A DNA stretch of 63,534 nucleotides, filler included, from Platydemus manokwari (taxonomy: Eukaryota): assembly GCA_037951405.1 (NCBI GenBank). It is 5 parts of 5 records of this genome, joined end to end, with 100 filler letters (N's around TTAATTAATTAA, not from the genome) between each part and the next. Parts side by side here need not be neighbours in the genome. Positions count along the whole stretch, not along the records: positions 26,908 to 41,310 come from JBBMOY011469196.1; 4 more parts are not named here. One strand, given 5' to 3'. Both the position numbers and the translations under genes were made by a program. The notes beneath the pieces are model-generated. The model had not been told where the DNA came from and made no database searches. It saw nothing but the letters and a program-made list of their open reading frames with translations. This document shows positions 3,001 through 40,092 of the stretch, in pieces (the stretch's first letter is position 1; every line of letters begins with the position of its first letter).

Positions 3001-4409
3001 TTAAACAATTTTCCTCCTTGAACATATGAGAAACGGTAGAAATCATATTTAAAACGGAATTATTTTTATATTCTTAATTGATTCCAGAAAATTTATTCAC
3101 TTTGCTGCAGTTAGAGTTTGAAATAATATTTGAACTTTTTCTCGGCTCACATTTCCGAACATGGATTGAATTTTAATCAAGGTGACGCATTCGTTTCAGG
3201 GTTCGGAGAGAATAAATTATTCAACGCAGATACACTAGATAATACAGTATATAATAACTGTTTAAGCGAGTTGGTGAGCCATATTTTAGAAAGATTAACA
3301 ATATTCATATATAGGAGCTTATTTTACTCAACTTGTTTTTCTCACACCTAAAGGTGATGCGGGATCGAAGGCCATGAATAAACCTGATCGTGTATTTTGG
3401 CAAAATAGCCAAATTATTATTATTTAATGCCTTTGTTTAATACTTCTGTTTAATACCTTTTCCCATAAGGGATTTGGACACCCTCCAACTTCATTCAAAA
3501 CAAATACCGTGGACTCTATTTAGCTTTTGAGAGGATAAATCGTTCATTTAAAATATTATTTTTTCTCTAATATTTGATAAAATTCTGAACATCAATAAAT
3601 AAAATGAAAAGTAAGTCCCATACAAAACAATGATCGCTCGTCAAACAATTATGAGCGATTCTTGATTTACAAAGCGACGATTATAATAGAAATAAATGTT
3701 GTTTTATTCATAAATTGAGAATCTTGTTTAATCAAATCGAATAACTAAATAATTTATTCCACAAATGGCTAATGAGAATTGTGTGTGTGTGTGTTAATGA
3801 ATTACATAAATATCTCATTTCAGATCAATATTTTCCCCTATTCTTCCTTACATCATGAGATTCTTCATTTTCGACAATTAATTTTATCGATTTATCGGAG
3901 TTAATTTAATCTTAATTTACAATTTCTCTCATTCTAATCGACCCCCTCCTATTTGCTAATAAATATTTTATTAAATTGAAGCGTATTGTTTTAATGAATT
4001 AATTATCATGCTCATAAAATATCGATGAAATATTGATTATCGTTTCTAATTGTGGTTCTATATTTCACACACAAAAATCAATTCATCAGATAATTTATTA
4101 ATTTTCTTTCATCTTTAATTCAATATTAAAAGCTAACAATGCTAGATCATATCCTGAAACCAAAACAGCTAATATTAGATGAGATGTATTCTAATATATA
4201 AATCAAACATAACTCTCTGACGCAACCATTCTATAAAGCAGACATTGAAAACGAACTTTCTTTAAGATGTTTGATCTTCTATGTATTCCTAATTATTTCT
4301 GTATTGAATTCTTCACGTGTTTGCCTCAATGAAAATTTCTATTTCTTCTCTTTTGAATATTCTTTATTTTCCATATATCTTCTCAGCTTTTTAATATCTT
4401 CCTCTTCTA

Positions 4410-29941: not shown

Positions 29942-31350
29942 TTATTGGTGTATTACGATATTAATATATATCGTTGATTGTTTCGACTTTTCAGTTATTA
30001 TTTCATTTGAAACTTTATAGGACTTCACAATTTGAAAATTGCACTTTTCTACAAAATAATATCATTGGATAAATTATAATTTATTGATTTCGTCTCACTC
30101 ATTAAATGTTCGAATTCATCATCGGTTATATTATGTGGTAATCCGTTCCAACCTTCAAAACTATGTTTATATTGTAGAGTTTCGAAATACATTCGACCAT
30201 CACTAGCGAGACATCTCCATAAGTTTTCCAAATACCTTGATTAGGAGATTTAATATAACTCTTTAAATTTATTTATAATGGAAAATATTAAATAAATGAT
30301 TGAATTGTTCAAACAAAAGTAATTTTAAATAAAACAGCTAAGTGTAAAACATATTATTGGTTTAAGATTAAACATTATAATGTTCTCTCTAAATTGATTC
30401 TGATTATTCATTGCATTTAGAGAAATTTTATTGAATTTGATTGAAAATAAAAATATAAAAATATCCAATGGAAATCTTTCTAAGGATCCATTGTATTGAA
30501 ATTATCAAATTGAAATAATAGTGAAAATAATATATATAAATAATAAAAATTTAAATTTATTTTTGTTTTTTCAAATTATAATTTAAGTACATTGAAAGAA
30601 TAATTTATTATTTTATTTTAAAATAAAATATAATCTTTGCTAGTTAATATTAGATATGAAATTTAATTTTATAAAATGTTTTAAAAATTGCATTTTTAAA
30701 AGTAAATTACTCTTCTTGAATCTCAGAATTCATTGATGCAAAACTTCCCCGATCATTTACGATGTCGAATTTGCCCACATAATGTCTGCAAAGTAAATAA
30801 ATAAATTATTAAATGATAAAATGAATTTTTAAATATATGCGGGTACCTAAATTGATTTCAATAATGATGCACAAACATTATAGAACATATTAAATATAAA
30901 TATATATTATCTAACTTATAAAACTCGAGAATATCTTCAACATATAATTTCACTTTTCCATCGATTGACTGTAATAATTATAAATATTATTTTATATTTA
31001 TTTCATTATAAATCAACTTGATAGATTTTATAGTTGTCATGACTCTCAATCTTATAATCAATTTGATTTTCTTCGAAAAACTCTTTGATTGCTTTTTCAT
31101 ATAGATCAACTCCGACAACGTACAGACCTTTCCTATACACCCATTCCATATCTAAACTTTTTCCACACAGTGGAAAGAAAACAACCGAATTTTCCTTTGC
31201 TTTTAAATCGTTCCAATTATCTACAAAATTCCTAAATACCAGAGAAATATGTTTCGTGAAAAGAAAAAGAAACTTTTACTTATTAACTTGTTTGCGATGC
31301 CAGATTGGATCCATCCATTTTTCAAGCCAAAATTCAAATGGTACAGACAT
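29942..31350 (-). CDS. TPMT: Thiopurine S-methyltransferase family SAM-dependent methyltransferase, 218 aa, 6 exons
   Basis: Exons 31350-31280, 31231-31018, 30968-30916, 30785-30711, 30235-30099 and 30048-29942 total 657 nt, ATG to TAA. Motifs FWLEKW...WH, VFFPLCGKSLDMEW, VVGVD...AIKEFF, GKFDIVNDRGSF and GLPHNI match the TPMT family. Confidence 0.93.
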
Positions 31351-32399: not shown

Positions 32400-35300
32400 G
32401 AAAATACAGAAGCGCAATTCTGTATGAAAATAGGAAGAATAAGGCAGAAGCACAAAACGTAATGCGAAATAAACATTTAATAATAGTTATATAAAGGACA
32501 ACAGTTAGATGATATATTTAATCGAAATAGGATGCAGTCAATATGAGACTAAAATTATAACAGCCATTGTCTTAGTCAGCAGCAGATAGATGCAACTCCA
32601 GTAACAGGATTTAAGTTAATAAGCATATAAATTGAACATCTCGGGAATTGAAGGAAGAGCCAAAAGGCATAATATTAGAAGAAAAACCAGAATGTGAAGA
32701 ACCCGAAGAAAAAGGAACAGTACTTTGAGTCTCAAGAAGATGGTGATAACGATGAGGGAAATTGAGAACTGAATTAGTAGGAGTGAAAGCGCAGATCCAA
32801 CATACGATCTTGAATGAAAAAAAGAATGATGAAGAAACATTTAGAAGTTTTACCCAAGGACAAAGAATAGGGACAAATAGCTTTAGTCTTTATGGTCGAA
32901 AGCTAAATGGTGTAATAACCAGACATCCTCAAAAACTCTGGGATACTCTTTCAAAAATGGCACACTACAAAAAACATGTTGAGTCATGGATGAATAGATA
33001 TTTTAGCTGACAAGGACTAATAAAGTGAACCAAAAATATCAAAAATTCTGATTTCGGAAACCAAATCTCAATTACATTGTTATGGTGAACCTTTCCAATA
33101 AAACAGGAACCACAACCATCACAGCGTTTTATTGTGACAAACTGCAGTTAAGAAAGATCTATATACTAGTCGATCTAGAAGAATGTCCAGAGGTCAGTAA
33201 GAAGAAATACTACGAAAATAATATATCATGTGTATCAGAAAACTGGTTTTAGAAGGGTAAAGATAAGGAAATTCGGAGTACTATGGCTTAGTTTGAATAT
33301 CACTCTTGCTCCCTCAGTCTTTGTGGAAGTGAAGCCCAAAATCATAGAAGTGCTACCAACAGCTTATAACGATGCTTTTGAGACTAAGAAATTTAGATTA
33401 GATGTGTTAAGTGATCAAATTATTTTTTAAAAAGTAGTTAAACTTACCTTTTGCTGAAAATTAGTCCTATTTCGGCTCTTTGAAGGCTTCAACAAGACCT
33501 TGGGTTAGAGATATATAGGATTTTTAGATGTTTCTTTTGATGAGTTATTTAAAAAGGTTATGCAAGTTGAAATGAATTCAAGTATATTATGAAGTCAATC
33601 TCGAGTTTAGGCAACAGCAATGCAGACTTCACATTTTGGCAAAATTGAAAGATGACACACATCAGAGATGAACGAAAACAAGCTTCCCAAAGTCAAACTT
33701 AGATCAAAGAAAATCTCGCAAGAAAATCCATAACATGTTTTTATTGTGGAAGAATAAGTCACTATACGAGCAAATGCGATCTAGACGAGAATTAGAGAAA
33801 ACAAATTGAAATACTAAGAAATTTCCAATGAAATTCTATAATTGTGAAAAGATGGGTCATTTGGCTTCTAATTGCAGGTCAAGAAAACCAATTAAATCCC
33901 AATATCGGGACGAAGTGAATTCAGAAGGAAGCATTAAATGTTATTCATATTGAAAATTTGGTTCTAGAGACAGATCTTGTCCTAGAAATCAAGAAAATAT
34001 TAATGAACATGAAATTTTAGAGAAAATCCATCTTTAATTAATGCAACATTCCCAAATGACACAGATTTTTTAGAAAATTTGGAAACAGAAATGTCGGAAA
34101 TTCAAACGAAACTGAGTCGGTTAGCTAATAAAATGGAACCAAAAGATAATTCATGTAATTTAATGGTAATTAATAAAAACGGCACTGAGGAAATCATAGT
34201 TAGAGAGACATCAGAATTGAGCACTAAACGCGGCCACACTGCTTTGAAAAAAGTAAGAGCTTGGAAAAGCAATCCGAATAAAAAGATGACAAAAATTTTA
34301 AAAAGTATCAAGACAACTGTGGAAACTGTTTGATAAAATTAAGAATGATGAATGTAATAATGAGATAAAAAACGATGGAAATGTAAACAAGTAATTAATA
34401 ACTGATAGATAGAATGAATTATGTAAACTGCAAGAAATACTTAATGATTCGAATTGAAAATCCTGGATGTGAATTGTTGGATATAAGGTCTATTCTAAAG
34501 TGAAAGATATTAAAGTCGGAATAGATGATGATAATACTTAGTTAATGTTTTTGAATCAAATTCTAGATTATGATGATGAATATTTAATGTCACATAGAAT
34601 AATACCAAAAACTATTAACATTATTAAACAAATATATAATAGTGATGAAACTCAAAAATTGTATAAAATCATAGTGGATAAACTCGAAACGAACAGAAGT
34701 CCGAAATAATTCTAAAATTCATGAAATATTAGATAGACTATCTGTGATTATAAACCTATACATTGAGAAATTTATATATATATATAAATCATAATTTTCG
34801 AGATTTATTTAAATTCTATAGTAAAAAATGTAGACAAAACCGAAGTAGTTTTCCATCTTTTGAAATTACTCTGGAGATAATTGGAGTTGGAATGATTCGA
34901 TTTAAGGAACATTGGTGTGCGAAAGTAAAACGCATTAGACGAAAAGCTACGCATATGCTGGAATATGAAGCAATAATTATTTTTTCATACCAAGGACAAG
35001 ATATGGATGACGATGAATACGTTATTGATTACTGCTGTATAATAGGCAAAAATGGCAACATTAGAGAGATAGTATACAGTGATCCACAAGACAAAAACCT
35101 TAAAAATAAATGAAAATTCCAATGAATCAACCAACGATTATCATGAGGAATTACAACAGAAGAAAGATGTGCACTATTATCTCTATCAATAATCCAATTT
35201 TCGAAGAGTACATGTTAAAGAATGTCTAATGAAGAAAACCACATTTGTTTAGCACTGTGAAAAGTAGAGCCATGGATCTTTAATTTTACTCTAAGCGATA

Positions 35301-35750
35301 CCCAGGCCAGTAGACATAGATGCGGATAATTGCCGATCTGCTTTTCAAAAAAAATGAATTAAAAATAGATCCTCTAATCAAATCGACAGAGAGAGGGTTT
35401 CTTTAAGAGAGAATCACTTACGGTCAATGGAACACTAGGAGCTGATTGATCTTGTGTTTCGGGAACTGCGTAAGATTTCGAATAAAATAGTAGATCACGC
35501 AATAGTAACAGGAGCATATTCATCTGAAATAAGGCAATGAAAAGCAGTATTTAACGAAGCTACAAGGAAGATGTAAACATACCCATTGTGTAATTCAAAA
35601 TCAAAAGGTGCAATACTGGTGAATCTATACCAGCACATAAGAAAACCAACGAATGCAACTTAGCATGATTTCATTGAGATAAGTAGTGGACAATTTCAAG
35701 ACCAAATACAACAATTTTCTTCATATAAACAAATCTTCAAATCAGGGCGA
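32400..35750 (+). mobile_element. Decayed LTR retrotransposon (probably Gypsy/Ty3), gag-pol remnants
   Basis: Two zinc knuckles at about 33733-33880: TCFYCGRISHYTSKC and KFYNCEKMGHLASNC, the second missing its first Cys. Weak RT-like remnants follow (IIGVGMIRFKEHWCAKVKRIRRK at about 34875; KKTTF...FTLSDTQA at about 35230). Many stops and frameshifts; boundaries approximate. Confidence 0.65.
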
Positions 35751-36173: not shown

Positions 36174-37502
36174 TCAATGTTGATATTTGTCTTTCCACCC
36201 TTCTTCTTTCTGCGGTTCAACGAACCCAATAAAATGGCAATCATCTAAAGCCCAACGAGCTCCATAACTCATTTCATTTCTAATTTCAAGTATTGCTATT
36301 TGATGCTAAAGCTCGAAATCAAAGTACCACACAACAGAAACATCAAATCCTACTGGCAATTGGTGTATGTTAATCCAAACGCATTCATCAATCAATTCAG
36401 TTACTTTTTCTAACGCTTTTTTGCTTTTCTGGGCTTCGCCTAGATTTTATATAATTGAATATTAGCATCAAATCAAACCAACTTCCATCACAGCTTCCCC
36501 ACCAATTAGTAGTCGAATCTCGATGGCAGTGTTTGGTTAAAGCTTTGGCACCAACAGACAATTCTTTCGATTTCCTTTATTAAAAATATTCAAAATACAC
36601 TACTTCATTTTCCATTCAATACTTTTTCAAATTTTACGACAATAATTCAAATCAATTTAACTTTATATTATGGCGAAATAATTGTTACTAAATTTAGTAA
36701 CATTTAATAATTGAAAATTAATTGATTTATTTAAACAATAGCAGATCAAAATATATCTTGTAAAACGTCATTTCAATACTCGATAAAAATTGTTTTAAAA
36801 ATTCAACTTACTGATAAAGTTTATTAAATTCTTCCAATAATTTCTCTTTAGGGATTGGTAAAATATCCTTTGAACCAATAGTTTTGCGCATACCCAATAA
36901 ATCTAAAATACCTCTCCACCCTATTATCTAGAAATAAAAATACATAATGATCACAAATTCATTAAAAATATTTACTTTTAAAATATGATAGATTCTCAAT
37001 AGTTTTTCGTTTTTATCTAAATTATACCATACCGCAGAAGATTCCAATGCAAACTTTCCAGCTTCGTTAAATTTTGAATTTCTAATTACTATCATTATCA
37101 ACTTTCACATAATAATTTTCATGCCTTTCTTGATCATAACTTTTCTCATCTAGCATGTAGAGAGACTTGGATTGCAATAAACACGTTCTAATATGAAACG
37201 TAATTAATTAAGTACTTCGATGAATTTAGCAACCCATTCTTAAATAGTTGTGACAGCTGATAAACAACTTGATAAATAAAAGGAGAAGAAGGGTATGTAT
37301 TTGGCAACTTTGAAAAATTGAAATCCTCCAATTGACTAGATTTATATGAATGATAATCTTCTAAAATTGGTTGAAAATCAATATCACTAAATTTTGAACT
37401 TGTATTTTGAAAGATCTTAATTGTTTTTGGAATAATATTTATTAGAGTTTAAACTCATAATACCTCGATCAACAAATTTAAAATTTCTTTTTCTATATTC
37501 AT
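36174..37502 (-). CDS. Uncharacterised 268-aa protein, 8 exons; C-terminal domain like the tail of plant 'RNA-binding ASCH domain' proteins, with no ASCH domain evident
   Basis: Exons 37502-37464, 37415-37234, 37187-37141, 37088-36976, 36927-36812, 36574-36483, 36439-36354 and 36305-36174 total 807 nt, ATG to TGA; six of seven introns are 43-52 nt. The C-terminus reads GWRGILDLLGMRKTIGS..LP..LSVGAKALTKHCHRD..WWG...WINIHQLP...EIRNEMSYGARW..D..FIGFVEPQKEEGWKDKYQH*. The family assignment is from recalled motifs, not a search. Confidence 0.85.
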
Positions 37503-40092
37503 TTAATATTAAATCTTTAACAATTTTAATATTTAAAATTATTAGTTAAAACAATGAAGTTTGTATATTAAAAAATATTGCCAGCTTTGCAAGATATAGA
37601 TCATAAAAATATCAATCAAGAAAAGTAACAAATATTTTTGTGAAATATTGACTGAATCTATCCTAATATTAATAAACGAAATTGAAAAAATTGAAACATT
37701 TGACAAAATTGAATACTCAAATGAAGAGTGTGATTTTAAATTTTCTTTTTATTTTTTATTTGAAATTATCATACGAAAATTTTGATTATTTTGAATACTA
37801 TTCGAGATGATTTTTCAATTTTAAAGTTTGAATTGTTCTATTCAAATCACTGTTGGAGTATTAATAAAAATTACGAATTTGAATAATAGTAATTTTCATC
37901 CATACACAGGATAAAATCAAAAAGTAATTATAATATGATAATTTGTCAAAATAATAAAAATTATACATGCCACAATTTAAGCAATTAATACAATGTATTC
38001 TCGCCTAGTTTTTAACTGAACAAAATTTTCATTAAGATTTTTTGAATTTGACATTTTGATTCGAGCATTGTGTTATATTATGCAGCTATTATACCATTGG
38101 TAATAACCCAAATCCGAAAATGGACTCCATATTATTATTATTATTAATCAGTTAACAATTATTAAAATTTAGCATTATTTATATCAAAGCATTAAAATCA
38201 AAGTTATTTAGATTAGGTGGCTCTCAGAAGAACACTTATCATGGATTCTTGGTGATTTTCTTTTTCATTGTCTTTTTTCTTTGAAGATTATCCTTTAGAT
38301 GCTTGTCATTTAGTGCGCATTGAGTTAGTTATTGACAAGAATATCTTCATTGTCGATGATTTATTCTTTGTTTTCATTTATTTCAATGTGTAGTCCTTTC
38401 TTTTTTTCGCCCGATTTACCACTTCTGTATTACCACTGTATAAAGCTTGTCTTTATGTTCACCCTTATACATTATACGGTAATTTAACTCACCCTTTATT
38501 GAATAAATTCTAGCTTGTTGAAAACAGTGTTTCTTTGTGGTTCCCATTCTCATGTACATCCACGATGAAGATATGTAGCCCGACTATATAGTTAGGTCAG
38601 TATTTCTTTTGAAGCACTTCTAACTTTTCCAATTTCTAATTATCTGTGATATTCAATAAATCTTTGTTCATCCATCTGGGATTTTATAACCACTGGCAAG
38701 ATGGTACATTTCTTTTCATTTTCTATATGAACGACTAATTTGGATATTACTTAATGATATACTATCATCTCTTTTTGTGGTAGTCATTCGTCTATATGTG
38801 TTTTTTGTATTGGTATAAGGCTTACTTTATTGTTGACATATCGGCATTCCACAGTAGTATTTTGTTTTATATTTGCATGTTTGACAGTTTATTTTGTTTT
38901 GCATCATCACTTCTAAGTCGGGTTCTGTTGATTTATGTTAAACAATTCTAGAGATTTATTCAGTATCTTCTCCTATCTTTTTAGAGTGTCTGCCTATAAA
39001 AAATCATTTAAAGCGGATTAAAATCTTATTTTACGCTCGGTGTCACTTGTTTACAGAGGCTAAGCCATTCATTATACGGCTTCATTTTGATGTACTATCA
39101 CTATCAGTGAATCTTGTGTTATAAAAATCTTTGCTTGTGTCCATGAATTGATTTTTTTTATCACTTAAAACATGCCGTACGTATGCTTTACATTACTGAA
39201 CCTTTCCCATAGAGTGAAGATACTTTTCTATATAAGTTTGGAGAGCATTCTAATTTCTCTACCACTGTGTTTGTCTTTTGATGCGAATTTTTGAGCGGAC
39301 ATTTTACTTAATTGATCATCATAGAACTCTACTGCACGACCAGAACAAAGTGCAGATTTGAGGTCGAAATTTCCACTTTTGAATGTGGTTTTATCAAATT
39401 CAATATCCTCTCCATACATAGTCGAATGACGAAAGCAACTTTTGAGACCTTAGAAACTTGATTAAAAGCAAAAGGGTATCAAAAATACCCATTATTCTCA
39501 TTTTGGCATTCTATTTTATGATCTGAAAATTAACAGAAATTAAGCACAACAAAAGAACAAACATAGATTCCGGAAGAGTAAAATACCCTCTTTAAAATGA
39601 TTTAACATACTATACCCAAAATATGTAATCAAGTGGGAAATTTAAAATTAAAAAAAACTGCGGTAAGTTAGTTGGCAGCCTAATATTTTTAAAATTTATT
39701 CAAAAATTATTCACTTGAAGATTTATTAATTTTTCAATATTTCTTACTCTCAACGTATTACATAAAGTCTGCACATACAAATTCTGTGCTGCGCTGTGTA
39801 TATGATATGATTGTATTTTTTGAGATTCCCATTTGTCTTACTGTGAGGAACAATGCTTCAATGTGAATAAATTGGAAACATTTTTCCATGTCCAGTAATG
39901 GTATGTAAAAATTGGCTTCTTTCTTGTAATTGTATTTCTTTAATATATATTTTATAAATTCATTTTGTTATCTGGAATTTTTGCATGGCTTTTTTCTTTA
40001 CCAGTAGGCATTTTTTATAATTGTAAAAAAACCCAACAAAATTATGAACCAACCTATAAATTATATATTGTGGCTAAAAATTCACGCAGAAC

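Follow-up and report, generated by a model that had tools for sequence, protein, structure and literature searches.

Does a very AT-rich locus of Platydemus manokwari, at which the mechanically called open reading frames (ORFs) are short, carry an intact spliced gene and, if so, is the encoded protein a bacterial toxin put to eukaryotic use or an enzyme of the cell itself? The question was raised by an earlier note on the window (the whole stretch of 63,534 nucleotides that was analyzed, consisting of five parts of GenBank assembly GCA_037951405.1 joined with filler). That note had read a gene with a toxin-like C-terminal region between positions 36174 and 37502, within the part that comes from JBBMOY011469196.1.

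An eight-exon gene on the minus strand

Blocks of the gene are spread over three minus-strand reading frames between 37502 and 36174 and are linked by GT...AG introns. Joined, the eight exons form a single open frame that extends from an ATG at 37502-37500 to a TGA at 36176-36174, both read in frame at the gene ends that had been proposed. The joined frame contains no stop codon or frameshift over 820 to 850 nucleotides, at a local GC content of 21 to 33%. All seven introns are of the GT-AG type, with lengths of 48, 28, 49 (or 28 or 55), 48, 237, 43, and 48 nucleotides. The sole ambiguous junction is that between exons 3 and 4, for which three frame-consistent GT-AG pairs exist, namely, 37103/37053 (49-nucleotide intron), 37109/37053 (55 nucleotides), and 37090/37061 (28 nucleotides). 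The choice among these pairs sets the size of the product to 273, 275, or 282 amino acids (aa); the claim of a complete spliced gene is upheld, but the length of 268 aa attached to it was not reproduced. Against the hidden Markov model (HMM) of the family described below, the three eight-exon models score 254.4, 253.0, and 251.9 bits, a spread of at most 2.5 bits, and this homology to the family is the basis on which the splicing is predicted. A single public run was found to contain the locus, a DNA run of ∼10× depth kept as contigs, in which no splice joints were seen; the search turned up no RNA run of the organism.

Exon 1 (37464..37502, like all the following on the minus strand) was delimited by frame reading, from the ATG at 37502 to a GT donor at 37463. 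Exon 2 (37216..37415), flanked by a 48-nucleotide intron upstream and a 28-nucleotide intron downstream, begins the N-terminal helical domain, and its YPSSPFIY corresponds to GYP..PLY of the family in the family-HMM alignment. The conserved family block LLDE.SY..ER lies in exon 3 (SLYMLDEKSYDQERHENYY..; 37103..37187), the 3' end of which is at 37109, 37103, or 37090, and the frame-consistent GT-AG pairs place the 5' end of exon 4 (36976..37053) at 37053 or 37061. Exon 5 (36812..36927) encodes a linker block, RGILDLLGMRKTIGSKD..P, with conservation extending to both eukaryotes and prokaryotes. Exon 6 (36483..36574) supplies the pre-alpha helix of the RNase-like domain, LSVGAKALTKHCHRD..WWG, which is profile-aligned to ALSKHAGR..IWG of the bacterial toxin structure 6d7y_A. 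The K-H-C-H-R codons within this exon (36520..36534, minus strand) include those for the predicted active-site residues, with Lys at 36532-36534, His at 36529-36531, and Arg at 36520-36522. Exon 7 (36354..36439) encodes the core alpha helix and strand beta1 (..ECVWINIHQLP), the secondary structure being taken from the model of an orthologue. Exon 8 (36174..36305) encodes strands beta2 to beta4 (LEIR, YGARW, and FIGFVEP), a eukaryote-specific tail, and an invariant C-terminal His, directly after which the stop codon falls in the alignment to the family HMM. The C-terminal strings quoted in the earlier note, LSVGAKALTKHCHR, WWG, WINIH, EIR, YGARW, and FIGFVEP, were all read directly from these exons.

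Several other models were considered and rejected. A seven-exon model in which exon 2 is spliced straight to exon 4 (256 aa) loses the conserved block of exon 3 and 16 bits along with it (238 versus 254), which agrees with the eight exons originally counted (252 to 254 bits for the eight-exon models). An eight-exon variant with a 21-nucleotide intron at 37082-37102 breaks the frame. The AT-richness and the tiny introns suggested a ciliate genetic code; however, the frame shifts across introns that are not multiples of three, and homology tracks the spliced standard-code model.

The introns of the gene are unusually small (28 nucleotides at 37188-37215, 43 and 48 nucleotides, and a single one of 237 nucleotides), which fits a fast-evolving, compact eukaryotic genome of 21 to 33% GC. 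Several other blocks with coding features were noticed in the surroundings. On the minus strand, an exon resembling thiopurine S-methyltransferase is found at 31009-31275 (Pfam TPMT, E value of 3.6e-16), and an open block at ∼30052-30240 probably represents the C-terminal part of the same TPMT-like enzyme, with no match in Pfam. Directly downstream of the gene, longer open blocks of higher GC content at 32750-35700 (plus strand) look like a decayed retroelement gag region and include a CCHC zinc knuckle, for example, at 33810-33950 (plus strand; Pfam zf-CCHC, E value of 2e-4). At 39231-39449 (minus strand), the sequence reads by eye like the N-terminal helix-turn-helix of a mariner/Tc1-type transposase (..FKSGNFDLKSA.CSGR..), again with no match in Pfam.

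A family of hypothetical proteins and its prokaryotic relatives

For the window gene, database searches were run with single exons, and the joined model was compared locally with the family proteins. Single exons gave no match in Pfam, NCBIfam, the PDB sequences, or a word-index protein search because they are too short. In an exhaustive HMMER search of 1.84 billion proteins, exon 8 alone (43 aa) yielded 19 matches at an E value of ≤1e-3, 18 of which belong to one family, a set of sequence matches far in excess of chance. The exception is the top match (P0001), a 1323-aa repetitive ORF with a recurring ..DVRQDLSYGA.W.. unit that matches YGARW by chance and was discarded as spurious. The others share the same C-terminal motif, are 240 to 370 aa long or fragments, and come, by source record, from Lytechinus, Capitella, Corticium, Glandiceps, the choanoflagellate Hartaetosiga, the ichthyosporean Amoebidium, Diphylleia, the oomycete Globisporangium, and Dictyostelium (DDB_G0284457). 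A family profile search recovered 333 members, the family as a whole measuring about 260 to 320 aa; the matches listed, mostly of 265 to 290 aa, are from cnidarians, echinoderms, molluscs, annelids, nemerteans, brachiopods, and sponges. All of the names met are “uncharacterized” or “hypothetical,” and a scan of the exons and homologues found no Pfam domain in family members. On sequence grounds, the window gene belongs to this existing, unnamed family of hypothetical proteins: the joined model scored 254 bits against an HMM of 121 members in a local hmmsearch, with residues 6 to 275 of the model covering positions 17 to 276 of 276. This end-to-end match and the open frame bear out the description of a stand-alone, intron-rich, intact gene. 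The same two-domain architecture, length, and motifs are seen in the orthologues from Dictyostelium (DDB_G0284457, Q54PN4), Nematostella (LOC5515849), Crassostrea virginica (LOC111120654), and Globisporangium ultimum (K3X6B4).

Judged from the best 120 matches listed, our impression is that vertebrates, arthropods, nematodes, fungi, and plants lack the family, and the usual model organisms are apparently without it among the matches listed. In particular, no plant members were among the matches of any search. An Atlas search with exon 8 gave a weak lead, an unnamed, Streptophyta-rich cluster of 64 aa (score 0.84), and an Atlas search of the named clusters with the C-terminal part of the oyster orthologue P0100 gave no match.

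The family is under strong constraint, with 25 invariant columns among 77 eukaryotic sequences. Of the 56 columns with a conservation of ≥90%, 45 are unchanged in the window protein. Two of the 25 invariant columns are changed in it (R178 to K and N204 to S), as is the nearly invariant R253 (to I); in oyster numbering, its departures are R178K, N204S, R253I, L256V, H264W, and W268Y. All but the first of these are shared with its nearest relative, P0002 (UPI000601E3B1); the counterpart of R178, which is K in the window, sits in a mispredicted stretch of the P0002 model. The window protein and P0002 form a divergent pair on the tree (SH-aLRT 95). On these grounds, the window gene is intact and lineage divergent rather than decayed, and the substitutions R178K, N204S, and R253I imply that activity or specificity may have shifted in the lineage.

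To place the family beyond eukaryotes, prokaryotic genomes were scanned, and five loci (L001 to L005) were found. Only L005 is truly bacterial, with genes for a sigma-54 response regulator, a histidine kinase, an M48 peptidase, and AIM24 as neighbors. The other four are likely eukaryotic DNA mis-binned into bacterial metagenome-assembled genomes (MAGs): L002 (CAVPPT010000007.1, a “Planctomycetaceae” MAG) has a GWRH tail and adjoins a gene for an eIF3 subunit; L003 (OZ219972.1, “Stappiaceae bacterium ... chromosome: 21”) and L004 each carry a match that occupies surplus DNA for its length, which points to introns; and L001 diverges in its 3' part. With the L005 protein as the query, 187 prokaryotic-type relatives of about 225 to 256 aa were recovered, all metagenomic. 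Their labels include one Planctomycetota in a bona fide bacterial locus and one Hermodarchaeota MAG. The homologue bearing the latter label (P0155, “Candidatus Hermodarchaeota archaeon,” Asgard) is located on a 44-kb contig.

The prokaryotic-type clade is very well conserved, with a mean column identity of 61%. Compared with the eukaryotic profile, both domains align (hhalign probability of 99.9, E value of 4e-37, 30% identity). The prokaryotic proteins are likewise stand-alone but lack the eukaryotic C-terminal tail and its terminal His, and they read WWNVFGH where eukaryotes have WINIH.LPH. Genes near the prokaryotic relatives are typically planctomycete (DUF1559/N_methyl, Ser/Thr kinase, TPR). 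Among these loci, there was no conserved neighbor and no evident immunity-like gene downstream on the same strand. An apparent fusion of prokaryotic homologues to DUF1559 was dismissed as an artefact of ORF picking, the DUF1559 match being in a different frame. Searches of plasmids (tblastn of the domain), viral contigs, PADLOC, and PHROGs gave no match.

In a quick maximum-likelihood tree, prokaryotes and eukaryotes are split with an SH-aLRT of 100 on each side, the long branches being unreliable. The eukaryotic members form one clade in the same tree, within which molluscs, cnidarians, and crinoids roughly group as expected. Eukaryotic monophyly and the agreement with species groups thus give no sign of recent domestication, and the pattern fits old vertical inheritance in eukaryotes rather than recent capture of a toxin. 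Accordingly, the term “domesticated,” which had been applied to the gene, is not supported by these data: the family is old, two-domain, monophyletic in eukaryotes, and roughly congruent with species groups, and it has a stand-alone prokaryotic sister clade.

The C-terminal domain and the colicin-D-like RNase fold

Since the window exons themselves have no match in the PDB, the link to toxins was made by way of the family profile. Built from 77 members, this profile had a single informative match in the PDB, 6d7y_A (E value of 1.1e-6, 32 bits), which spans 83 profile positions (185 to 267). Chain A of 6D7Y is the toxic tip of CdiA from Pseudomonas aeruginosa PABL017, a contact-dependent growth inhibition (CDI) tRNase with a BECR fold closest to that of colicin D. 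An AlphaFold2 model of the oyster orthologue P0100, built with the family alignment, reached a pLDDT of 92.3 and a pTM of 0.90. The structure comparisons use P0100, which is at most 44% identical to the window protein, so that the fold of the latter is read through its orthologue. In the model, the secondary structure elements H175-186, H200-216, E218-226, E230-237, E242-246, and E252-256 give the C-terminal region a pre-alpha helix, an alpha helix, and a four-stranded antiparallel sheet, the topology of a colicin-like BECR domain. Foldseek ranked 6d7y_A first (probability of 1.00, target-normalized TM of 0.84, root mean square deviation [rmsd] of 2.1 Å, 27% identity) and found no other credible match beside it. 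In a VIA-align search of 48,161 representative chains, 92 of the 92 residues of 6d7y_A were aligned with model residues 160 to 257 (Z of 11.2, rmsd of 1.8 Å), followed by the colicin D tRNase (Z of 6.1 and 5.4) and then further CDI tRNases. Profile and structure searches thus agree on the toxin-tip likeness that had been proposed (E value of 1.1e-6, TM of 0.84, and Z of 11.2), and they support homology between the C-terminal ∼100 aa of the family and the tip of a CdiA toxin that has the colicin-D-like BECR RNase fold. The PABL017 CdiA tRNase tip is the closest known relative of the C-terminal domain of the family.

The likeness extends to the residues expected to act in catalysis. The window sequence ALTKHCHR aligns via the profile to ALSKHAGR of the toxin, with K-H..R kept, and K182, H183, and R186 are invariant in 77 eukaryotic and 36 prokaryotic sequences. 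Position 25 of the toxin SEQRES is residue 3372, the H of ALSKHAGR, a numbering deduced from the chain range 3352-3443 and the 96-residue SEQRES. His3372 of CdiA-CT PABL017 is catalytic (PMC9086364), and its counterparts in the alignment are the family-invariant H183 and, in the window, the His encoded at 36529-36531. By sequence alignment, the catalytic histidine is conserved between the family and the active toxin, and the K-H..R residues noted earlier are indeed intact. In colicin-like BECR RNases, which mostly target tRNAs, the Lys-His of the pre-alpha helix is the hallmark and the usual catalytic pair (bioRxiv 10.64898/2026.08.28.747851). K-H..R, E.R, G.R-W, and G-F-L-E-P are invariant in both the eukaryotic and the prokaryotic groups, and among the conserved columns of the family the window protein retains K, H, R, E.R, and G.R-W. 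Shared by the family and PABL017 CdiA-CT are A-L-x-K-H-x-x-R, W-G, G, N, E-x-R, G-x-G-x-R, D-G, and F-x-G-F. The Ser/Thr or His that is typical of strand beta4 in colicin-like RNases is not evident in the family, where this strand reads F-[RI]-G-F-[LV]-E-P.

The second-best structural match, the tRNase domain of colicin D (PDB 5ZNM, 1TFK, and 1V74; the Tox-ColD or “colicin-like” BECR group), has the same topology of pre-alpha helix, alpha helix, and strands beta1 to beta4 and shares the Lys/His pair on the pre-alpha helix. However, it is only 5 to 7% identical to the family, and no sequence-level match to it was found in single-exon and profile searches against the PDB. The catalytic set of colicin D, K607, K608, H611, D614, and S677 (PMC3482391), is only partly mirrored in the family. 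Tox-EDA39C, a toxin-derived RNase domain of plants, fungi, and Dictyostelium (PMC3482391), was also considered as a relative and set aside; it is defined by two histidines, and nothing links it to the family of the window gene.

Outside the RNase-like domain, the window protein differs from both of the protein types with which it had been compared. PABL017 CdiA-CT caps a giant CdiA filament that is secreted, and it has an immunity protein, whereas the window protein stands alone, without delivery domains. Conversely, the ∼150-aa helical N-terminal domain and linker, the eukaryote-specific C-terminal tail, and vertical inheritance are found only on the side of the window protein. In polymorphic and contact-dependent toxin systems, the tip is fused to delivery domains and accompanied by a cognate immunity gene; the window gene shows neither and therefore lacks the defining features of a polymorphic toxin system. 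Pfam searches of the exons and homologues detected no domains for secretion or delivery, and the first residues, read by eye, show no hydrophobic signal-like N-terminus. As for the plant “RNA-binding ASCH domain” proteins, the ASCH domain (a PUA-like beta-barrel) has no match in any exon or homologue, as the earlier note had anticipated; in the P0100 model, only helices precede the RNase-like domain. This helical domain (residues 1 to 150 of the model) has only generic structural matches (VIA-align Z of ≤4.3). It is followed by a conserved linker, LLG.R.T.GS.D..PP, and at the other end of the protein, the eukaryotic tail, PQ..G...[WY].H, ends in an invariant His that is the last residue.

Predicted activity and alternative readings

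The reading toward which we lean, with modest confidence, is that the gene is intact and eukaryotic, has been inherited vertically, and encodes a two-domain protein of the cytosol, the metal-independent, colicin-D-like BECR endoribonuclease domain of which likely cuts tRNA and is restrained by the N-terminal domain. The proposed protein consists of a ∼150-aa, family-specific helical domain, the linker, and a ∼110-aa colicin-D-like BECR domain, predicted to be a ribonuclease. In the latter, the invariant Lys-His of the pre-alpha helix would cut structured RNA without a metal, supported by the invariant Arg, Glu, and Arg on the helix and sheet, with which it would form the active site. A tRNA loop would be the most likely substrate, and the cut would leave a 2',3'-cyclic phosphate. 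The helical domain might restrict or direct the activity by controlling access, such that the enzyme would be tolerated in its own cell.

The main alternative, possible if rather unlikely, is that the BECR-like domain is catalytically dead and serves only as an RNA- or protein-binding module, the protein being an adaptor or a regulator. Such a module would accord with the substitution, in the window lineage, of R178 and N204 (invariant in the family) and R253 (nearly so) and with the lack of an obvious beta4 catalytic Ser/Thr/His of colicin-like RNases; moreover, a fold by itself is no proof of function, and a constitutively active tRNase in the cytosol would be harmful. However, K-H, R, E.R, and R are invariant in eukaryotes and in the prokaryotic clade and are common to the active toxin, and retention of the exact catalytic His over such a distance is unusual for a pure binder. 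There is very little to suggest that this copy is decaying or unexpressed and that the spliced model is an artefact of stitched conserved pieces: the ambiguous exon 3/4 junction and the transposon remnants close by have to be set against 820 to 850 nucleotides with no in-frame stop or frameshift, where random frames are short at such low GC, seven GT-AG introns, and an end-to-end family alignment that closes with the invariant terminal His and the stop codon.

A further reading is recent capture, by which the protein would be a bacterial conflict or defense toxin, that is, a domesticated polymorphic-toxin tip directed against pathogens or competitors. Transfers of bacterial toxin domains into eukaryotes are known (PMC3482391), and the nearest solved structure is a CDI toxin tip, but we regard this origin as improbable. 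The single, well-supported eukaryotic clade (SH-aLRT 100) with inner groups that follow phyla, the uniform protein length, and the conservation of both domains down to protists all argue against it. So do the lack of a Pfam secretion or delivery domain and of a hydrophobic signal-like N-terminus, the solitary state of the prokaryotic relatives, with no conserved neighbor or immunity-like gene, and the absence of matches in the phage, defense, and viral libraries. Thus, the protein is probably a cellular RNA-cutting enzyme and not a weapon. A broader and more tentative proposal, which we put forward as possible but doubtful, is that the family itself is an ancient cellular endoribonuclease of early eukaryotes and Planctomycetota-type bacteria, which would cut specific tRNAs or another structured RNA in normal RNA metabolism or the control of stress; the toxin tip of the PABL017 type would then be a weaponized offshoot and not the ancestor.

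To our knowledge, colicin-D-like BECR RNases are known almost solely as bacterial weapons, namely, colicins, CDI and Rhs tips, and phage effectors. In the present case, the nearest relative of one of these tRNases is part of a cytosolic protein that is conserved, single, and inherited vertically. Members of the family occur in animals, choanoflagellates, amoebozoans, oomycetes, and CRuMs; no experimental study of it was found in the literature, and it has no Pfam model. A protein-coding gene has been placed at a site in the window where ORF scanning shows nothing, and its C-terminal domain, as judged from sequence and model, would be a new stand-alone, eukaryote-wide form of a known RNase fold, with RNase activity predicted. 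If active, the protein would be a new eukaryotic RNA-cleaving enzyme and a possible source of tRNA fragments, and the family offers a tractable test of how a lethal RNase fold stays harmless in its own cell.
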